NCBI GenBank assembly: GCA_950097015.1
Contig: CATNEN010000010.1
Location: forward strand, 434,001-498,000
DNA length: 64,000 nucleotides
Direction: 5' to 3'
DNA from: Macrostomum hystrix
Lineage: Eukaryota; Animalia; Platyhelminthes
Positions 17,501 through 26,500 of the stretch are shown piece by piece. A program made the translations under genes and the position numbers. How positions within the stretch are numbered: position 1 is the first letter of the stretch; each line of letters starts with the position of its first letter. The notes beneath the pieces were generated by a model. It was not told the DNA's origin, searched no databases, and saw nothing but the letters and a program-made list of their open reading frames with translations.

Positions 17501-20500
17501 CAGCTCCCCAGGCTCAGTATTGTCCCAGTTCTCCATGCTCAGTATTGTCCCAGTTCCCCATGCTCAGTATTGTCCCAGTTCCCCATGCTCAGTATTGTCC
17601 CAGCTCCCCATGCTCAGTATTGTCCAGCTCCCCATGCTCAGTATTGTCCCAGTTCTCCAGACTCAGTATTGTCCCAGTTCTCCAGGCTCAGTATTGTCCC
17701 AGTTCTCCAGGCTCAGTATTGTCCCAGTTCCCCAGGCTCAGTATTGTCCCAGTTCCCCAGGCTCAGTATTGTCCCAGTTCTCCAGGCTCAGTATTGTCCC
17801 AGTTCCCCAGGCTCAGTATTGTCCCAGTTCTCCATGCTCAGTATTGTCCCAGCTCCCCAGGCTCAGTATTGTCCCAGTTCTCCATGCTCAGTATTGTCCC
17901 AGCTCCCCAGGCTCAGTATTGTCCCAGTTCTCCATGCTCAGTATTGTCCAGTTCCCCATGCTCAGTATTGTCCCAGTTCCCCATGCTCAGTATTGTCCCA
18001 GCTCCCCATGCTCAGTATTGTCCCAGCTCCCCATGCTCAGTATTGTCCCAGTTCTCCAGGCTCAGTATTGTCCCAGTTCTCCAGGCTCAGTATTGTCCCA
18101 GTTCTCCAGGCTCAGTATTGTCCCAGTTCCCCAGGCTCAGTATTGTCCCAGTTCCCCAGGCTCAGTATTGTCCCAGTTCTCCAGGCTCAGTATTGTCCCA
18201 GTTCTCCATGCTCAGTATTGTCCCAGTTCCCCATGCTCAGTATTGTCCCAGTTCCCCATGCTCAGTATTGTCCCAGCTCCCCATGCTCAGTATTGTCCCA
18301 GCTCCCCATGCTCAGTATTGTCCCAGTTCTCCAGGCTCAGTATTGTCCCAGTTCTCCAGGCTCAGTATTGTCCCAGTTCTCCAGGCTCAGTATTGTTCCA
18401 GGTCCCCAGGCTCAGTATTGTCCCAGTTCTCCAGGCTCAGTATTGTCCCAGTTCCCCAGGCTCAGTATTGTCCCAGTTCTCCATGCTCAGTATTGTCCCA
18501 GTTCTCCATGCTCAGTATTGTCCCAGCTCCCCATGCTCAGTATTGTTCCAGTTCCCCAGGCTCAGTATTGTCCCAGTTCTCCAGGCTCAGTATTGTCCCA
18601 GTTCCCCAGGCTCAGTATTGTCCCAGTTCCCAAGGGCTTGCAGCACAGTAGTGTCCTAGTTCCCCAGGGCTTGCAGCACAGTATTGTCCCAGTTCCCAAG
18701 GGCTTGCAGCACAGTAGTGTCCCAGTTCCCCAGGGCTTGCAGCACAGTAGTGTCCCCAGTTCCCCAGGGCTTGCAGCACAGTAGTGTCCCAGTTCCCCAG
18801 GGCTTGCAGCACAGTAGTGTCCCAGTTCCCCAGGGCTTGCAGCACAGTATTGTCCCAGTTCCCCAGGGCTTGCAGCACAGTAGTGTCCCAGTTCCCCAGG
18901 GCTTGCAGCACAGTAGTGTCCTAGTTCCCCAGGGCTTGCAGCACAGTAGTGTCCCAGTTCCCCAGGGCTTGCAGCACAGTAGTGTCCTAGTTCCCCAGGG
19001 CTTGCAGCACAGTAGTGTCCCAGCTCAGTGTATTCTCGCACCTCAAGATGCAGAACAGCAACTCACAAGTTTGGCGAATTCTTGATTTGAAACTCCGGCG
19101 ACGGAAACAAACCGACATCTGTGCATTCACCATTCACTAAGATGCCCTGCCACCAGTCCGAGTCTTCACTCAGCACCTCGATGATGTCACCGCGTTGGAA
19201 AGTCAGCCCGGCCATCTTGCACGGGTGCAGCGGGTCGTCGTGTGGATTGTATTCATATGGAGCCCGAATGAACTGCTGCTGCCGCTGCTGCTGCGAAACA
19301 GACTGACCGTTTTCAGTGCGCCGACGAACTTTGAAGTGCAGCTGGCCTGGCTTGTTCTGTGCGTTTGATGGTTTACATTCCGTATATACTATATACATTC
19401 AGGATATGCTATGTACATTCAGGACATGCTATGTACATTCAGGACATGCTATGTACATTCAGGATATGCTATGTACATTCAGGACATGCTATGTACATTC
19501 AGGATATGCTATGTACATTCAGGACATACTATATACATTCAGGATATGCTATGTACATTCAGGATATGCTATGTACATTCAGGATATGCTATGTACATTC
19601 GGCATGTGCTATGTACATTCGGCATGTGCTATGTACATTCGGCATGTGCTATGTACATTCGGCATGTGCTATGTACAGTCGGGATGTGCTATGTACAGTC
19701 GGGATGTGCTATGTACAGACGGGTTGTGCTATGTACATTCAAGATAGGCACTGTACATCAAGGATAGTTGTGTTGTACTTTTATATGTGTTGTACTTTCA
19801 TTATATAGAAACTAGTATTTGACCGTTGCAGCTAAATATCCCATAGACAATTCGTTCTACCTGTTTGTTTGCGAGGACCGCGTTAAGAGTGTTTGCGGCT
19901 CTAGCTTTCGTGCTAACCCCGGGCTTTGCTATCTACACAAATACATTAGACCACAAGCTATCGCGGCAATACGCAACGATGGCAAGCGCAGTCAAATTCA
20001 GCGACATAATCAAGCAGTACGACGGTGAAGAGGATTTTTCGCGCTGGGCACAGAAGCTCGAACTCGTTGCCAAGCTCCAAAAAGTGAATGACCTGGCTGC
20101 TTTCATCCCACTATTTCTATCGGGAGGTGCGTTCGCCGTGTACCAGGCACTAAACGAGGAAAGCAAGTCGGACTACAAAACTCTGAAAGCGGCTCTTACC
20201 TCAGCGTTCTGCCCAAACAAGTACAAAGCATACGACGAGTTCGTGTCACGCAGGCTCGGCCCCGGGGAGTCCGTGGACGTTTTTCTCGCGGATCTCACGA
20301 GGCTTGCACGCCTAGTGGACGAGATCCCCGGGGAAGAATGGATCAAATGCGCATTCGTCCGCGGGCTTCCAGCAACCGTCAGTCAGCAGCTGATCGCTTC
20401 CTGCTCTCTAAAAGAGCTCGAACTCCATGAACTAGCGGAGAAAGCTAGAAACTTAACGATCAGTCGCGAGTCCTGCTGTGTTGTCTCGAGCGCAGGAAAT

Positions 20501-23500
20501 GCGCGAAGCGCTGGAAAGTTCGCCCCACGCAACAAAGTGATGTCGTGCTACTCGTGCGGCAAGGAGGGCCATGTGAGCAAAGAGTGCATGGAACGCAACC
20601 GAGCGAATCAAGGTTGTTTTGTTTGTGGAAAAGCGGGACATGTGGCTGCTCGATGCCCGCAGCGCGCCGATTTTCAAAAAAACGAGTGATGGAAGCGCGG
20701 AATGTTTGCGCCAACGGGCTTCCTTGTGCACCGGCGCACCTACCATCGTTAAGTGTTCATGTTAATAGTTTGGTCGTTACTGCTTTAGTAGATACTGGTT
20801 GTTCGCGGTCCATCGTTTCTTCACGAGTTACTGGAGTTAAAAAACGTCCCGTTCACGAGAGGGTCACGATGATGAATGGTGACTCAGCAGAATGTGAATG
20901 GGAGGCTGACGTTGCTTTGTCTGTTCGAGGCCACCAATTACCAGTGCTGCGATGTATCGTTATGGACATCCTTCCTGGGTTCGATTTGCTGCTTGGGATG
21001 GATGCTATCAGCCGATTGGGCGGTGTCTCTGTGAAGCGAGATTGCCGCAGTGTCCGCTTCGGTATTGAAGAGCAGTCATTAGCGCTGGAGACTGCTGCGG
21101 TAGCCAAGGCTTTCTCAAAACCAAAGGCGGAGTCACCTGTGAGCTGTCCGGCAGGAGAGGTCGAGTCACCTGTGAGCTGTCCGGCAGGAGAGGTCGAGTC
21201 ACCTGTGAGCTGTCCGGCAGGAGAGGTCGAGTCACCTGTGAGCTGTCCGGCAGGAGAGGTCGAGTCACCTGTGAGCTGTCCGGCAGGAGAGGTCGAGTCA
21301 CCTGTGAGCTGTCCGGCAGAAGAGGTCGAGTCACCTGTGAGCTGTCCGACAGGAGAGGTCGAGTCACCTGTGAGCTGTCCGGCAGGAGAGGTCGAGTCAC
21401 CTGTGAGCTGTCCGGCAGGAGAGGTCGAGTCACCTGTGAGCTGTCCGGCAAGAGGAGCGAGGCTTGCGAAAAATACTTTAACCGAGGCGTGCCTGGTGCT
21501 TGAGGAAAAAGACTTCTCTGCTAAGTTTATCGATGGAGAGTGGACAGTGGCATGGAAGTGGCTGGATGAGGCCCCACTACTGTCAAATACGATAGCTCAA
21601 TACCGAGTCCCACCAGAGGCGGTAGGCGAGTATGAGTCAGAGATAAAAGACTGGATTCAGCGAGGTTGGCTGCTACCGTTCGAAGGTGACAGTGACGGCG
21701 TCATCCCTCTGATGGCAGTGGTGCAGACCAACAAAGCAAAGGTGCGGCCTGTACTCGACTATCGCGAGTTGAACCAGTACGTGTCAAGCCACACCGCCGA
21801 AAGCGTCGTGTGCGGCGCCAAGCTCCGGGCCTGGCGGCGGCTCGGTGAGAATGCGAGTATCATCGACCTGCGGAAGGCCTACCTACAACTGCGATTGGAC
21901 CCCAGTCTCTGGCGCTACCAAGTAGTGAGGTTCAAAGGCCGCCGTTACTGTCTCACCCGGTTAGGATTCGGACTCAACGTGGCGCCAAAAATTATGACGG
22001 CGGTTGTGAACAAAGTCCTGTCGATGGAAGACGACGTGCGTGAGGCCACGGACTCTTACATTGACGACATTATTGTGAACAATAGCAAGATTCCGAATGA
22101 ACGCGTAACTGGGTTGCTTGCCCGGTTCGGGCTAGAAGCCAAGCCTCCTGAGAGCCTCATTGGGGGCCGCGTGCTCGGCCTCCGCGTCTACCGTCGAGAG
22201 GATGGGGTCATTTGCTGGAAACGAGACAATGTCCTCTCTCAGTTGAAAGGTCCAGCAACACGACGGCAACTATTCTCCTGGTGCGGCCAGCTAGTAGGCC
22301 ATTTCCCCGTCGCCGCATGGCTGCGTGTCGCATGCAGCTACTTGAAGCGGGTCACCAGCACAATCGCGTGGGACGCTATCGTCAGCGAGTCTGCCATGCG
22401 GATCGCCCAAGAAATCAGCGAAATGGTCCAGGAACGAGATCCTGTCGCTGGGGTGTGGACCGTTGACGAGACTTCGCGCTGTCGCGTCTGGTGCGACGCC
22501 AGCAGCATCGCCATTGGAGCCGTCATCGAAATTGGTGGCGTAATCGTGGAGGACGCCTCGTGGTTGCGAAAACAAGACGACGCTGCGCACATCAATCTTG
22601 CCGAACTTGAGGCGGTCCTCAAGGGTATCAACCTTGCCCTCGCTTGGGGTACGAGGAAAGTTGAAGTGTTGACTGATTCTGCAACCGTGCACGGCTGGCT
22701 CCAGTCTTTGATTGTCGGCGATAAGCCCGTGCGAGTCAAAGGTTTCGGTGAAGCTCTGGTTCGGAAACGGCTATCATTAATCCGAGACACGGCGTCGGAG
22801 TGCGAGCTCGAGCTACTGACATCGCTGGTGCCATCTTCAGCAAACAAGGCAGACGCACTGACGCGAGTACCGCAACAGTGGCTGCGCCAGCGGCCCTTCT
22901 GTGCAGTGGCGCTGCGCCCCGTTGACATGGATCTCCGTGCGTGCCACGAGAAGCACCACTTCGGGGTGGACAGGACGCTCTACCTGGCCAAACTGTGCTT
23001 CCCTGAACGTGAGGTACTGCGTGAAGAGGTTGAGCGCATCGTTGCAAACTGCATCCGATGCAAGTCCGTAGACCCTGCGCCGATGGTTTGGGACCATGGC
23101 AGACTCGAGGTGGATGCAAACTGGTGGCGCTTGGCCTGCGACGTGACCCACTTTAAGGACGACCGCTATCTGTCCATTGTTGACTGCGGGCCGAGCAGAT
23201 TCTCGCTGTGGCGAAAACTCACCGACGAGCGGACAGCGTCAATTACCGGGATACTCGTGCAGGTGTTCCGAGAGCGGGGCCCTCCCTGGCAGCTGCTTCT
23301 CGACAATTCACCGACCTTCCGCTCCGCTGAGGTCCGTGCGTTTTGTGAGGCTTGGGGAGTGCAGCTCCTCTTCCGTTGCGCTCACCGGCCGTCAGGCAAC
23401 GGAATAGTCGAGCGCAATCATCGGACGATTAAGCGGATGGCAGCCAGAACCGGAAAGGACGTACTGGAAATGGTGTTCTGGTACAACATGGCTCCAAAGG

Positions 23501-26500
23501 ATGGCACTCGCAAGGACAGCGTGCCCAGCAGAATGGTCAGCACCTATGACTGGAAGCCGCCAACTGTGTCTCTCCCTGAGGCCTTGCCTTGGAGACCTTG
23601 GAGGCAAACCCACGCCCCACGCCCACCCTGCCAGTGGGAACAGAAGTGTTTGTTAAACCGCCGGCCGTCAGATGCACCGACGAGTGGCCTAGGGGACGCG
23701 TGACGGGCCAGGGACAAGGGTCTACGGTGGAGGTCGATGGCCTTCCCCGTCACGTAGCTGACGTCCGCCCGGCACCAGACACGCAACCGCAGCCTCCTGG
23801 GGTGGAGCGAGCTGTCGAGCGGGATGCCGAACCACGACGGTCTAATAGGGTGAAGTCGGCGCCGGTCCGTTACGAACCTTGATCTCTTGTGATCCGGAGA
23901 TCAGGGGGTGATGTGTTGTACTTTTATGTGTTGTACTTTCATTATATAGAAACTAGTATTTGACCGTTGCAGCTAAATATCCCATAGACAATTCGTTCTA
24001 CCTGTTTGTTTGCGAGGACCGCGTTAAGAGTGTTTGCGGCTCTAGCTTTCGTGCTAACCCCGGGCTTTGCTATCTACACAAATACATTAGACCACAATAG
24101 TCAGTGTACGCTTGAGTTCTCACCAGAACGAAGGCCAATTGTTCTTGAGTCAGTTCAGCCAGCTCTTTGCCGTCAACAGACAGCAGCCGGTCGCCACGAC
24201 GCAGTTTTCCATCGCTAGCACCTCGGCAAATAACATGAGTGACCTCTAGCTCACTGTTGAGTACCAGCCCCTGCGTTGGGAAAATGACGGAGAAATCAAA
24301 ATCGACGATTTCAGCTGCAATTTTGCTTCAATACTGCAAAATACTGCTGCAGCTGCATTACAAAGCATGGGGAACTGGGACAGCTGCAATTTTGCTTCAT
24401 TTAACACAGCTGCTACAGCTCTCATGTCCATGAGAAATCTCATGGCTATCTCAAGGAATCGCAGCAGGATAGTAGTTGGAATATCGTAGTAAGTCTGCAT
24501 CTGCTGCCCCACTTTCCCTGCATCTCCTGCCCCACCTTCCCTGCATCTCCTGCCCCACCTTCCCTGTATCTCCTGCCCCACCTTCCCTGCATCTCCTTCC
24601 CTACCCTCCCTGCATCTCCTGCCCCACCTTCCCTGCATCTCCTGCCCCACCTTCCCTGCACTGCTGCCCCACCTTCCCTGTATCTCCTGCCCCACCTTCC
24701 CTGCATCTTCTTCCCTACCCTCCCTGAATCTCCTGCCCCACCTTCCCAGCATCTCCTTCCCTACCCTCCCTGCATCTCCTGCCCCACCTTCCCTGCATCT
24801 GCTGCCCCACCTTCCCTGTATCTCCTGCCCCACCTTCCCAGCATCTCTTTCCCTACCCTCCCTGCATCTCCTGCCCCACCTTCCCTGCATCTCCTGCCCC
24901 ACCTTCCCTGCACTGCTGCCCCACCTTCCCTGTATCTCCTGCCCCACCTTCCCTGCATCTCCTTCCCTACCCTCCCTGAATCTGCTGCCCCCCTTCCCTG
25001 CATCTGCTGCCCCACCTTCCCTGCATCTCCTGCCCCACCTTCCCTGCATCTCCTGCCCCACCTTCCCTGCATCTGCTGCCCCACCTTCCCTGCATCTCCT
25101 GCCCCACCTTCCCAGCTCTCCTTCCCTACCCTCCCTGAATCTCCTGCCCCAACTTCCCTGCATCTCCTGCCCCACCTTCCCAGCTCTCCTTCCCTACCCT
25201 CCCTGAATCTCCTGCCCCAACTTCCCTGCATCTCCTGCCCCACCTTCCCTGCATCTCCTTCCCTACCTTCCCTGCATCTCCTACCCCACCTTCCCTGCAT
25301 CTGCTGCCCCACCTTCCCTGCATCTCCTGCCCCACCTTCCCTGATCTCCTTCCCTACCCTCCCTGCATCTGCTGCCCCCCTTCCCTGCATCTGCTGCCCC
25401 ACCTTCCCTGCATCTCCTGCCCCACCTTCCCTGCATCTCCTTCCCTACCCTCCCTGAATCTCCTGCCCCACCTTCCCAGCTCTCCTTCCCTACCCTCTCT
25501 GAATCTCCTGCCCCAACTTCCCTGCATCTCCTGCCCCACCTTCCCTGCATCTCCTTCCCTACCTTCCCTGCATCTCCTGCCCCACCTTCCCTGCATCTCC
25601 TGCCCCACCTTCCCAGCATCTCCTTCCCTACCCTCGCTGAATCTCCTGCACCAACTTCCTTGCATCTCCTTCCCTACCCTCCCTGAATCTCCTGCCCCAA
25701 CTTCCCTGCATCTCCTGCCCCACCTTCCCTGCATCTCCTTCCCTACCTTCCCTGCATCTCCTGCCCCACCTTCCCTGCATCTCCTGCCCCACCTTCCCAG
25801 CATCTCCTTCCCTACCCTCGCTGAATCTCCTGCACCAACTTCCTTGCATCTCCTTCCCTACCCTCCCTGAATCTGCTGCCCCCCTTCCCTGCATCTGCTG
25901 CCCCACCTTCCCTGCATCTCCTGCCCCACCTTCCCTGCATCTGCTGCCCCACCTTCCCTGCATCTCCTTCCCTACCCTCCCTGAATCTCCTGCCCCACCT
26001 TCCCTGCATCTCCTTCCCTACCCTTCCTGAATCTCCTGCCCCACCTTCCCAGCATCTCCTTCCCTACCCTCCCTGCATCTCCTGCCCCACCTTCCCTGCA
26101 TCTGCTGCCCCACCTTCCCTGTATCTCCTGCCCCACCTTCCCTGCATCTCCTTCCCTACCCTCCCTGAATCTCCTGCCCAACCTTCCCTGCATCTCCTTC
26201 CCTACCCTCCCTGAATCTCCTGCCCCAACTTCCCTGCATCTGCTGCCCCACCTTCCCTGCATCTCCTTCCCTACCCTCCCTGAATCTCCTGCCCCACCTT
26301 CCCTGCATCTGCTGCCCCACCTTCCCTGCATCTCCTTCCCTACCCTCCCTGAATCTCCTGCCCTACCGTCCCTGTTCTACCCTCCCTGCATCTGCACCCC
26401 AGTCCTCACCAGTGATCTGTTGTTTGTGTCCTTGTACACCCAGGACGTCCTCGACGCCCTGGATGTCTTCTTCTGCCAGGTCTGGGGCCTCATCAAGCGG

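Follow-up and report, generated by a model that had tools for sequence, protein, structure and literature searches.

Only three types of primer were distinguished in a 2019 survey of retrotransposons with long terminal repeats (LTRs): the 3' end of a tRNA, a tRNA half produced by a cut at the anticodon, and a self-primer (PMC6317226). The canonical primer-binding site (PBS) starts with TGG, lies directly after U5, and follows the sequence of a host tRNA, as is also the case in retroviruses primed by the tRNA-Phe 3' end. The half-tRNA primers of Drosophila copia, yeast Ty5, and plant Osser and Bianca are 5' pieces of a host tRNA, and their PBS abuts the 5' LTR; cut 5' tRNA pieces can thus prime (PMC6317226; PMC5371799). 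These primers end in the anticodon stem or loop at approximately nucleotide (nt) 39, pair through internal tRNA bases, and are usually derived from the initiator tRNA-Met. In Tf1 and sushi elements, the primer is an 11-nt piece from the 5' terminus of the element's own transcript, cut by RNase H at the end of the duplex; for Tf1, the cut lies between bases 11 and 12 of the 5'-terminal RNA paired to the PBS (PMC7175516). We describe here a 4.3-kb LTR retrotransposon of the flatworm Macrostomum hystrix, located at positions 19769 to 24096 of a 64,000-nt stretch of DNA (contig CATNEN010000010.1, positions 434,001 to 498,000 of the forward strand) that was analyzed as a whole and is referred to as the window. 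The 12 bases that follow its 5' LTR probably form a PBS for the 5'-terminal 12 nt of cytoplasmic tRNA-Phe(GAA), rather than for the 3' CCA end, with the tRNA cut after U12.

The 5' LTR (187 bp, TGTG...ACA; 19769 to 19955, + strand) carries TATATAG at 19803 to 19809 and ends in ...GACCACA. The 3' LTR (185 bp; 23912 to 24096, + strand) is nearly identical to it. Outside both LTRs stand the same five bases, ATAGT, as an unstranded target-site duplication (left copy at 19764 to 19768, right copy at 24097 to 24101). The predicted PBS, AGCTATCGCGGC (19956 to 19967, + strand), abuts the terminal CA of the 5' LTR with no spacer. A canonical TGG-type site is absent at the LTR junction, and the first TGG is found 24 nt from the LTR, within the context of the gag start codon. 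The coordinates of the LTRs and of the duplication bear out an earlier note on this DNA, which had fixed the LTR end from its TG..CA termini and the 5-bp duplication and had read AGCTATCGCGGC rather than TGG directly after it.

The earlier note had also taken the 12-mer to be complementary to the start of a tRNA, and the host genome agrees. The 220-Mb host assembly contains 67 occurrences of GCCGCGATAGCT, the reverse complement of AGCTATCGCGGC, compared to 17 for a reversed control. Among the first 30 of these places, ARAGORN called a tRNA-Phe(GAA) whose first base coincides with that of the 12-mer in three (L001, L019, and L020). A pattern with free acceptor positions matched four tRNA-Phe(GAA) genes in the host (C1:773108, C7:4814838, C7:4819323, and C35:779299), three of which were typed by ARAGORN, and all four start with GCCGCGATAGCT (GCCGCGA). 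Neither the GCCGAAA start that is usual in animals nor any other acceptor variant was found among the four genes matching the pattern. Compared to human and fly, the host tRNA-Phe presumably differs only at acceptor pairs 5-68 and 6-67, with C-G and G-C in place of A-U. We estimate the chance of a 12/12 match at one site to be about 3 in a million, given some 50 different tRNA starts among the 4^12 12-mers that can be formed.

Two other candidates from the host genome were rejected. The other multicopy context of GCCGCGATAGCT (L003 to L007, L009, L010, and similar loci) belongs to a different LTR element, unrelated to the one described here, whose 750-amino-acid (aa) pol frame contains RVT_1 together with an integrase zinc domain. 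The 12-mer falls within this frame by chance, which inflates its count in the genome. A 15-mer, ACAAGCTAGGGTGGC, with 10 occurrences in the host genome was considered as a second site of this kind and was discarded, since no host tRNA starts with its complement.

Pairing with the site involves all of the tRNA's 5' acceptor strand, then U8 and A9, and lastly G10-C11-U12 in the D stem. The genomic leaders that precede position +1 of the tRNA (..CAA) do not extend the pairing, and C13 of the tRNA stands opposite the last A of the LTR. Nucleotides 1 and 12 of the mature tRNA thus mark the exact limits of the complementarity. Likewise, the pairing never extended to tRNA nt 13 in ten curated elements of the family.

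Within the host genome, the window family comprises approximately 16 full copies with 97 to 100% identity. ACA followed by AGCTATCGCGGC is present in all copies at 99 to 100% identity and in a copy at 93% identity, and it has one change in a copy at 95% identity. Because the family is young, conservation among these copies alone says little. A second host family is approximately 77% identical in pol, and its copies on contig 8 and contig 34 carry the same ACA plus 12-mer. In the contig 8 copy, neither the LTR nor the leader can be aligned with its counterpart in the window element, and the blastn match begins at the last three bases of the LTR. The 12-mer is therefore held constant between diverged flanks.

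Relatives of the pol protein were found by the hundreds at 46 to 72% identity, mostly on contigs of approximately 4 kb. A copy in Hydra vulgaris, with identical 202-bp LTRs and a GAACC duplication, reads ...ATTACA and then AGCTATTTCGGC. A copy in the leafhopper Macrosteles, in which the 3' LTR is shorter than the 5' LTR, reads ...AATTACA and then again AGCTATTTCGGC. This sequence is the complement of GCCGAAATAGCT, the usual start of animal tRNA-Phe, and a published 5' probe for Drosophila tRNA-Phe, GCTCTCCCAACTGAGCTATTTCGGC, shows that an insect tRNA-Phe starts with GCCGAAATAGCT (PMC7038984). Further contigs of relatives carried AGCTATATCGGC, AGCTATCTAGGC, AGCTATCCGGCC, and once more AGCTATCGCGGC. 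No TGG was present at the junction in the Hydra, Macrosteles, or metagenome relatives, and no tRNA genes were found on the contigs of relatives that were examined.

A scan of metagenome contigs by pol alignment gave 80 loci, gag being too diverged for the locus search. A gag profile then placed 58 gag starts, and the 12-mer was sought within 140 nt upstream of each, with a required motif of [A/C]GCTA that is expected by chance in approximately 7% of 140-nt stretches. A matching 12-mer was present upstream of 55 of the 58 gag starts, nearly always right after CA, and more loci show the site elsewhere on the contig. In most elements, 0 to 20 nt separate the site from the gag ATG. The primers deduced from these sites, given as tRNA nt 1 to 12, were GCCGAAATAGCT (14 gag starts), GCCGCGATAGCT (10), GCCGTGATAGCT (9), GCCTAGATAGCT (8), GCCGAGGTAGCT (3), GCCCGGATAGCT, GCCTCGGTAGCG, and CGCGTGATAGCT (2 each), and GCCCGGCTAGCT, GCCGTAATAGCT, GCCGTGTTAGCT, TGCGCGATAGCT (one base missing), and CCGATGATAGCT (one base extra) (1 each); a wider scan added GCCGGGATAGCT in three further loci. 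Acceptor variants among the deduced primers include GCCGAAA, GCCGCGA, GCCGTGA, GCCTAGA, GCCGAGG, GCCCGGA, GCCCGGC, and GCCGGGA. GCCCGGATAGCT and GCCCGGCTAGCT have what we take to be the form of animal tRNA-Lys starts, and GCCTCGGTAGCG has the form of another tRNA. The site variant that matches the acceptor of the host tRNA-Phe is also seen in several metagenome relatives.

In a profile of 61 unique junctions, the information content was near maximal for ACA and the following 12 nt and was at background at positions -4 and +13. The only variable positions were 6 to 9 of the PBS, which correspond to nt 4 to 7 of the tRNA, in the acceptor stem. These junctions show the ACA plus 12-nt layout to mark a whole family of approximately 4-kb gag-pol elements with DUF7047, in which the site appears to change with the tRNA acceptor stem. 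The conservation of the 12-mer among family copies, whose absence the earlier note had named as a refutation, is thus found in the approximately 16 copies and in the second host family, and its proposed covariation of the PBS with tRNA 5' ends in other species is seen in Hydra, the leafhopper, and the metagenome relatives. Its suggestion that a very short 5' tRNA fragment ending in the D stem could serve as the primer is likewise supported.

Several features around the junctions of the relatives were recorded separately. Position +13 is A in 37 of the 61 junctions. The leader before the ATG, which is short, could account for this, or copying of the primer up to its end could be followed by addition of an untemplated A. 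Additional tRNA contacts in U5 or the leader, of the kind known from Ty1 and Ty3, were sought in the ten curated elements, and nothing was found in eight. In the metagenome relatives L086 and L089, U5 carries AACTGAGCT/ACTGAGCT (13 and 47 nt before the PBS, respectively), complementary to nt 9 to 17 of tRNA-Phe; this stretch may be a second tRNA contact or the relic of a longer site. L089 and L090 have a tRNA-like stretch, GGCTCGGTGGCTCAGTGG...GGTTCAATCC, in the U3 of the LTR approximately 270 nt before the PBS, and L139 has GGTCCGTGGTTCGAACCG in a long leader; ARAGORN calls no tRNA in either case. The contigs of L086, L089, L092, L107, and L108 follow the order pol-LTR-gag-pol-LTR-gag, in which one LTR alone separates adjacent units. 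They could be tandem arrays, circle junctions, or the result of assembly through a repeat.

The predicted site of the window family shares features with each of the described systems. As with canonical sites, the partner is a host tRNA, the site lies directly after U5, and it follows the sequence of the tRNA. In contrast to canonical sites, it lacks TGG and would pair with the other end of the tRNA. The family resembles copia and Ty5 in the use of a 5' piece of a host tRNA, but only nt 1 to 12 are involved, the piece ends in the D stem, the tRNA is tRNA-Phe (with tRNA-Lys-like sites in a few relatives), and the domain order is protease-reverse transcriptase (RT)-RNase H-integrase. Half-tRNA primers are defined by an internal tRNA stretch that reaches the anticodon region, whereas pairing in the window family stops at nt 12. 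The length of the paired RNA (12 nt) and the pairing of a 5' end are nearly the same as in Tf1 and sushi. The Tf1 primer, however, is RNA of the element's own transcript, whereas none of the ten curated LTRs carries a complement of the site, which pairs with a host tRNA and tracks it between hosts.

A priming mechanism can be proposed from these features. The tRNA-Phe, or a 5' piece of it, would anneal to the PBS, probably aided by Gag with its zinc knuckles. The 3' end of the primer would be U12, which pairs with the first base after U5; for the primer to end there, the tRNA must be cut between U12 and C13. The new 3'-OH at U12 would then prime minus-strand strong-stop DNA, the primer as RNA being GCCGCGAUAGCU. 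Synthesis of plus-strand strong-stop DNA would copy the 12 RNA bases and run off the 5' end of the tRNA. Since the primer would in this way be recopied into DNA in each cycle, the mechanism would explain why the site is fixed at 12 nt and kept equal to the host tRNA. By analogy with Tf1, the cut after U12 would most simply be made by the RNase H of the element at the end of the RNA:RNA duplex, a possibility that the earlier note had raised.

Several points weigh against this mechanism. Priming is inferred from sequence, and the public runs consist of contigs, without reads that mark a transcript start or a cDNA end. In the folded tRNA, nucleotides 1 to 12 are hidden inside the acceptor and D stems, and we know of no cut after tRNA nt 12. 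Positions 1 to 5 of the junction profile are partly circular, as they were given by the search motif [A/C]GCTA. The match read directly to a host tRNA is a single one, that of the window host. The same pairing could also be served by a ready-made 5' tRNA fragment of the host, either a short fragment (tRF-5) or a 5' half, with its tail trimmed to the edge of the duplex by a host nuclease, so that the RNase H of the element would be unneeded. Animals contain 5' tRNA fragments. Copia-type elements use a precut 5' tRNA piece (PMC6317226; PMC5371799), and the present data do not point to the cutting enzyme. The exact limit at 12 nt throughout the family is more in keeping with a cut measured on the duplex than with processing at a host site. 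Known short 5' tRNA fragments, moreover, end in the D loop at approximately 14 to 16 nt and not at nt 12. Such a host-made fragment, the chief alternative for the cutting step only, is in our view rather unlikely.

A different role for the 12-mer, as a tRNA-binding or regulatory site that serves the packaging of tRNA-Phe, control by host 5' tRNA fragments, or control of gag translation while the minus strand is primed otherwise, is suggested by its closeness to the gag ATG, which makes a function in translation or silencing conceivable. The 12-mer, however, always touches the terminal CA of the LTR, the position that defines a PBS, and neither a TGG-type site nor a self-primer is present to take its place. 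A limit as sharp as that at tRNA nt 1 would also be expected if a primer were copied through to its 5' end. A purely regulatory site is improbable. Self-priming of the Tf1 type, with the start of the element's own transcript folded back on the PBS and cut to give the primer, had been judged not to fit by the earlier note, on the grounds that the LTR holds no copy of GCCGCGATAGCT. The best match in the window LTR, GCGGCTCTAGCT (19895 to 19906), indeed reaches only 9/12, as does GCAGCGATAGAC in an LTR of the second host family (L026), with a shuffle P value of approximately 0.03 for each. The other eight curated LTRs are at chance level with 6 to 8/12, so that the ten elements span 6 to 9/12; the two 9/12 matches lie at different LTR positions, and in one of them a mismatch falls on the 3' end, from which priming would need to start. 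The PBS tracks the host tRNA and not the LTR, and the U5-PBS-leader RNA of the window element folds no better than shuffled sequences (z, 0.32). Self-priming is thus very improbable. That the 12-mer is functionless and resembles a tRNA start by chance has next to no likelihood: -UAGCU is common at tRNA nt 8 to 12, which makes a loose resemblance easy, but a 12/12 match to every host tRNA-Phe gene found, retention between unalignable flanks, and covariation in other hosts refute it.

Priming from the tRNA-Phe 5' end may extend beyond this element. Tentatively, and with slightly more doubt than belief, we suggest a fourth primer type beside the three given in textbooks and recent surveys, in which 12 nt of a host tRNA 5' end, mostly of tRNA-Phe, are measured and cut by the element's own RNase H. 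It would mark a widespread, unnamed lineage of small animal and aquatic retroelements and form a bridge between tRNA priming and Tf1 self-priming. Given the near-equal primer length and the 5'-end geometry, the two may share an origin. The predicted PBS for tRNA-Phe nt 1 to 12 is family-wide, with one host match verified directly. If the reading is true, a family-wide PBS for tRNA-Phe nt 1 to 12 that tracks its host is what would constitute the fourth type, and it raises the enzymological question of what cuts the tRNA after nt 12.

Large screens test only 12 nt of tRNA 3' ends (PMC13524379). Since surveys seek only 3'-end matches (PMC6317226; PMC13524379), elements of the window type would be scored as lacking a PBS, and pipelines of this kind would miss the PBS of the whole family. 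No description of such a PBS was found in open-access full text searched also with the literal site sequences, and an older report is possible; literature matches to the site sequence itself were primers or Northern probes only. The PBS has the same sense as the 3' acceptor strand of the tRNA, and it would therefore be a target of 5' rather than 3' tRNA fragments, which bears on silencing by the host.

The window element itself is an intact, recently active LTR retrotransposon, with paired LTRs, a target-site duplication, gag and pol, a polypurine tract, and near-identical genomic copies. The two LTRs differ by one 2-bp indel and are otherwise nearly identical; the 176 nt that lie downstream of it show 99% identity. 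gag (19979 to 20689, + strand; ATG at 19979) encodes 236 aa with two CCHC zinc knuckles. The pol frame (1,052 aa; 20545 to 23703, + strand) is in the -1 frame relative to gag and overlaps it, and its domains are, in order, protease, RT, DUF7047 (PF23088), RNase H, and integrase. The RNase H domain (22477 to 22887, + strand, limits approximate) matches Pfam RVT_3, and its structure model, with a mean predicted local distance difference test (pLDDT) score of 88, matches RNase H folds. The polypurine tract, GGAGATCAGGGGGTGA (23896 to 23911, + strand), abuts the 3' LTR. Its core, ATCA(G/A)GGGGTG, is also present in the Hydra copy and in the metagenome relative L086, and L089 has a looser form, ATCAGGGAGGGGTG.

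The order protease-RT-RNase H-integrase is that of Ty3/gypsy elements (Metaviridae), but the element does not look like a typical member of that group. RVT_1 scored below the cutoff and RT_RNaseH gave no match; DUF7047 and RVT_3 matched instead. The nearest solved proteins by sequence in the PDB were retroviral integrases and a foamy virus RT, with Ty3 absent, and retroviral Pol clusters ranked next after the element's own cluster in a language-model search. The distance from the RT palm to RNase H is only approximately 130 residues, DUF7047 included. In a fold search with the modeled RNase H, archaeal or bacterial type 1 RNases H appeared nearest, and those of Ty3 and foamy virus were somewhat lower; the domain ends in an NKADxLTR motif that is common in retrotransposons. 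Some RNases H of the archaeal group cut double-stranded RNA, which is a lead only. Judged from these matches and the model, the family may be a separate deep lineage. Odin retrotransposons and lokiretroviruses are likewise animal gag-pol LTR elements that look closer by crude measures to retroviruses than to Ty3/gypsy (PMC9040795). Odin elements are reported only from sea anemones and are characterized by a dual RNase H (a tether plus a new RNase H) and an RT sister to that of lokiretroviruses, and PMC9040795 is silent on primer sites.

Between the protease and RT domains, pol contains an in-frame tandem repeat (21130 to 21454, + strand) of 9.8 copies of a 33-nt unit (ESPVSCPAGEV). The copy number varies among genomic copies, whose alignment lengths differ by multiples of 33, and the second host family has a different repeat at the same position in pol. 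Immediately upstream of the element, a 20-nt minisatellite of 19.6 copies (19374 to 19766) ends a few bases before its target site, and many more such arrays are present in the window. The element and this preceding minisatellite lie inside a GT..AG intron (19361 to 24123) of a minus-strand host gene. Contigs from four public runs join 19360 directly to 24124 and look like spliced mRNA of that gene.

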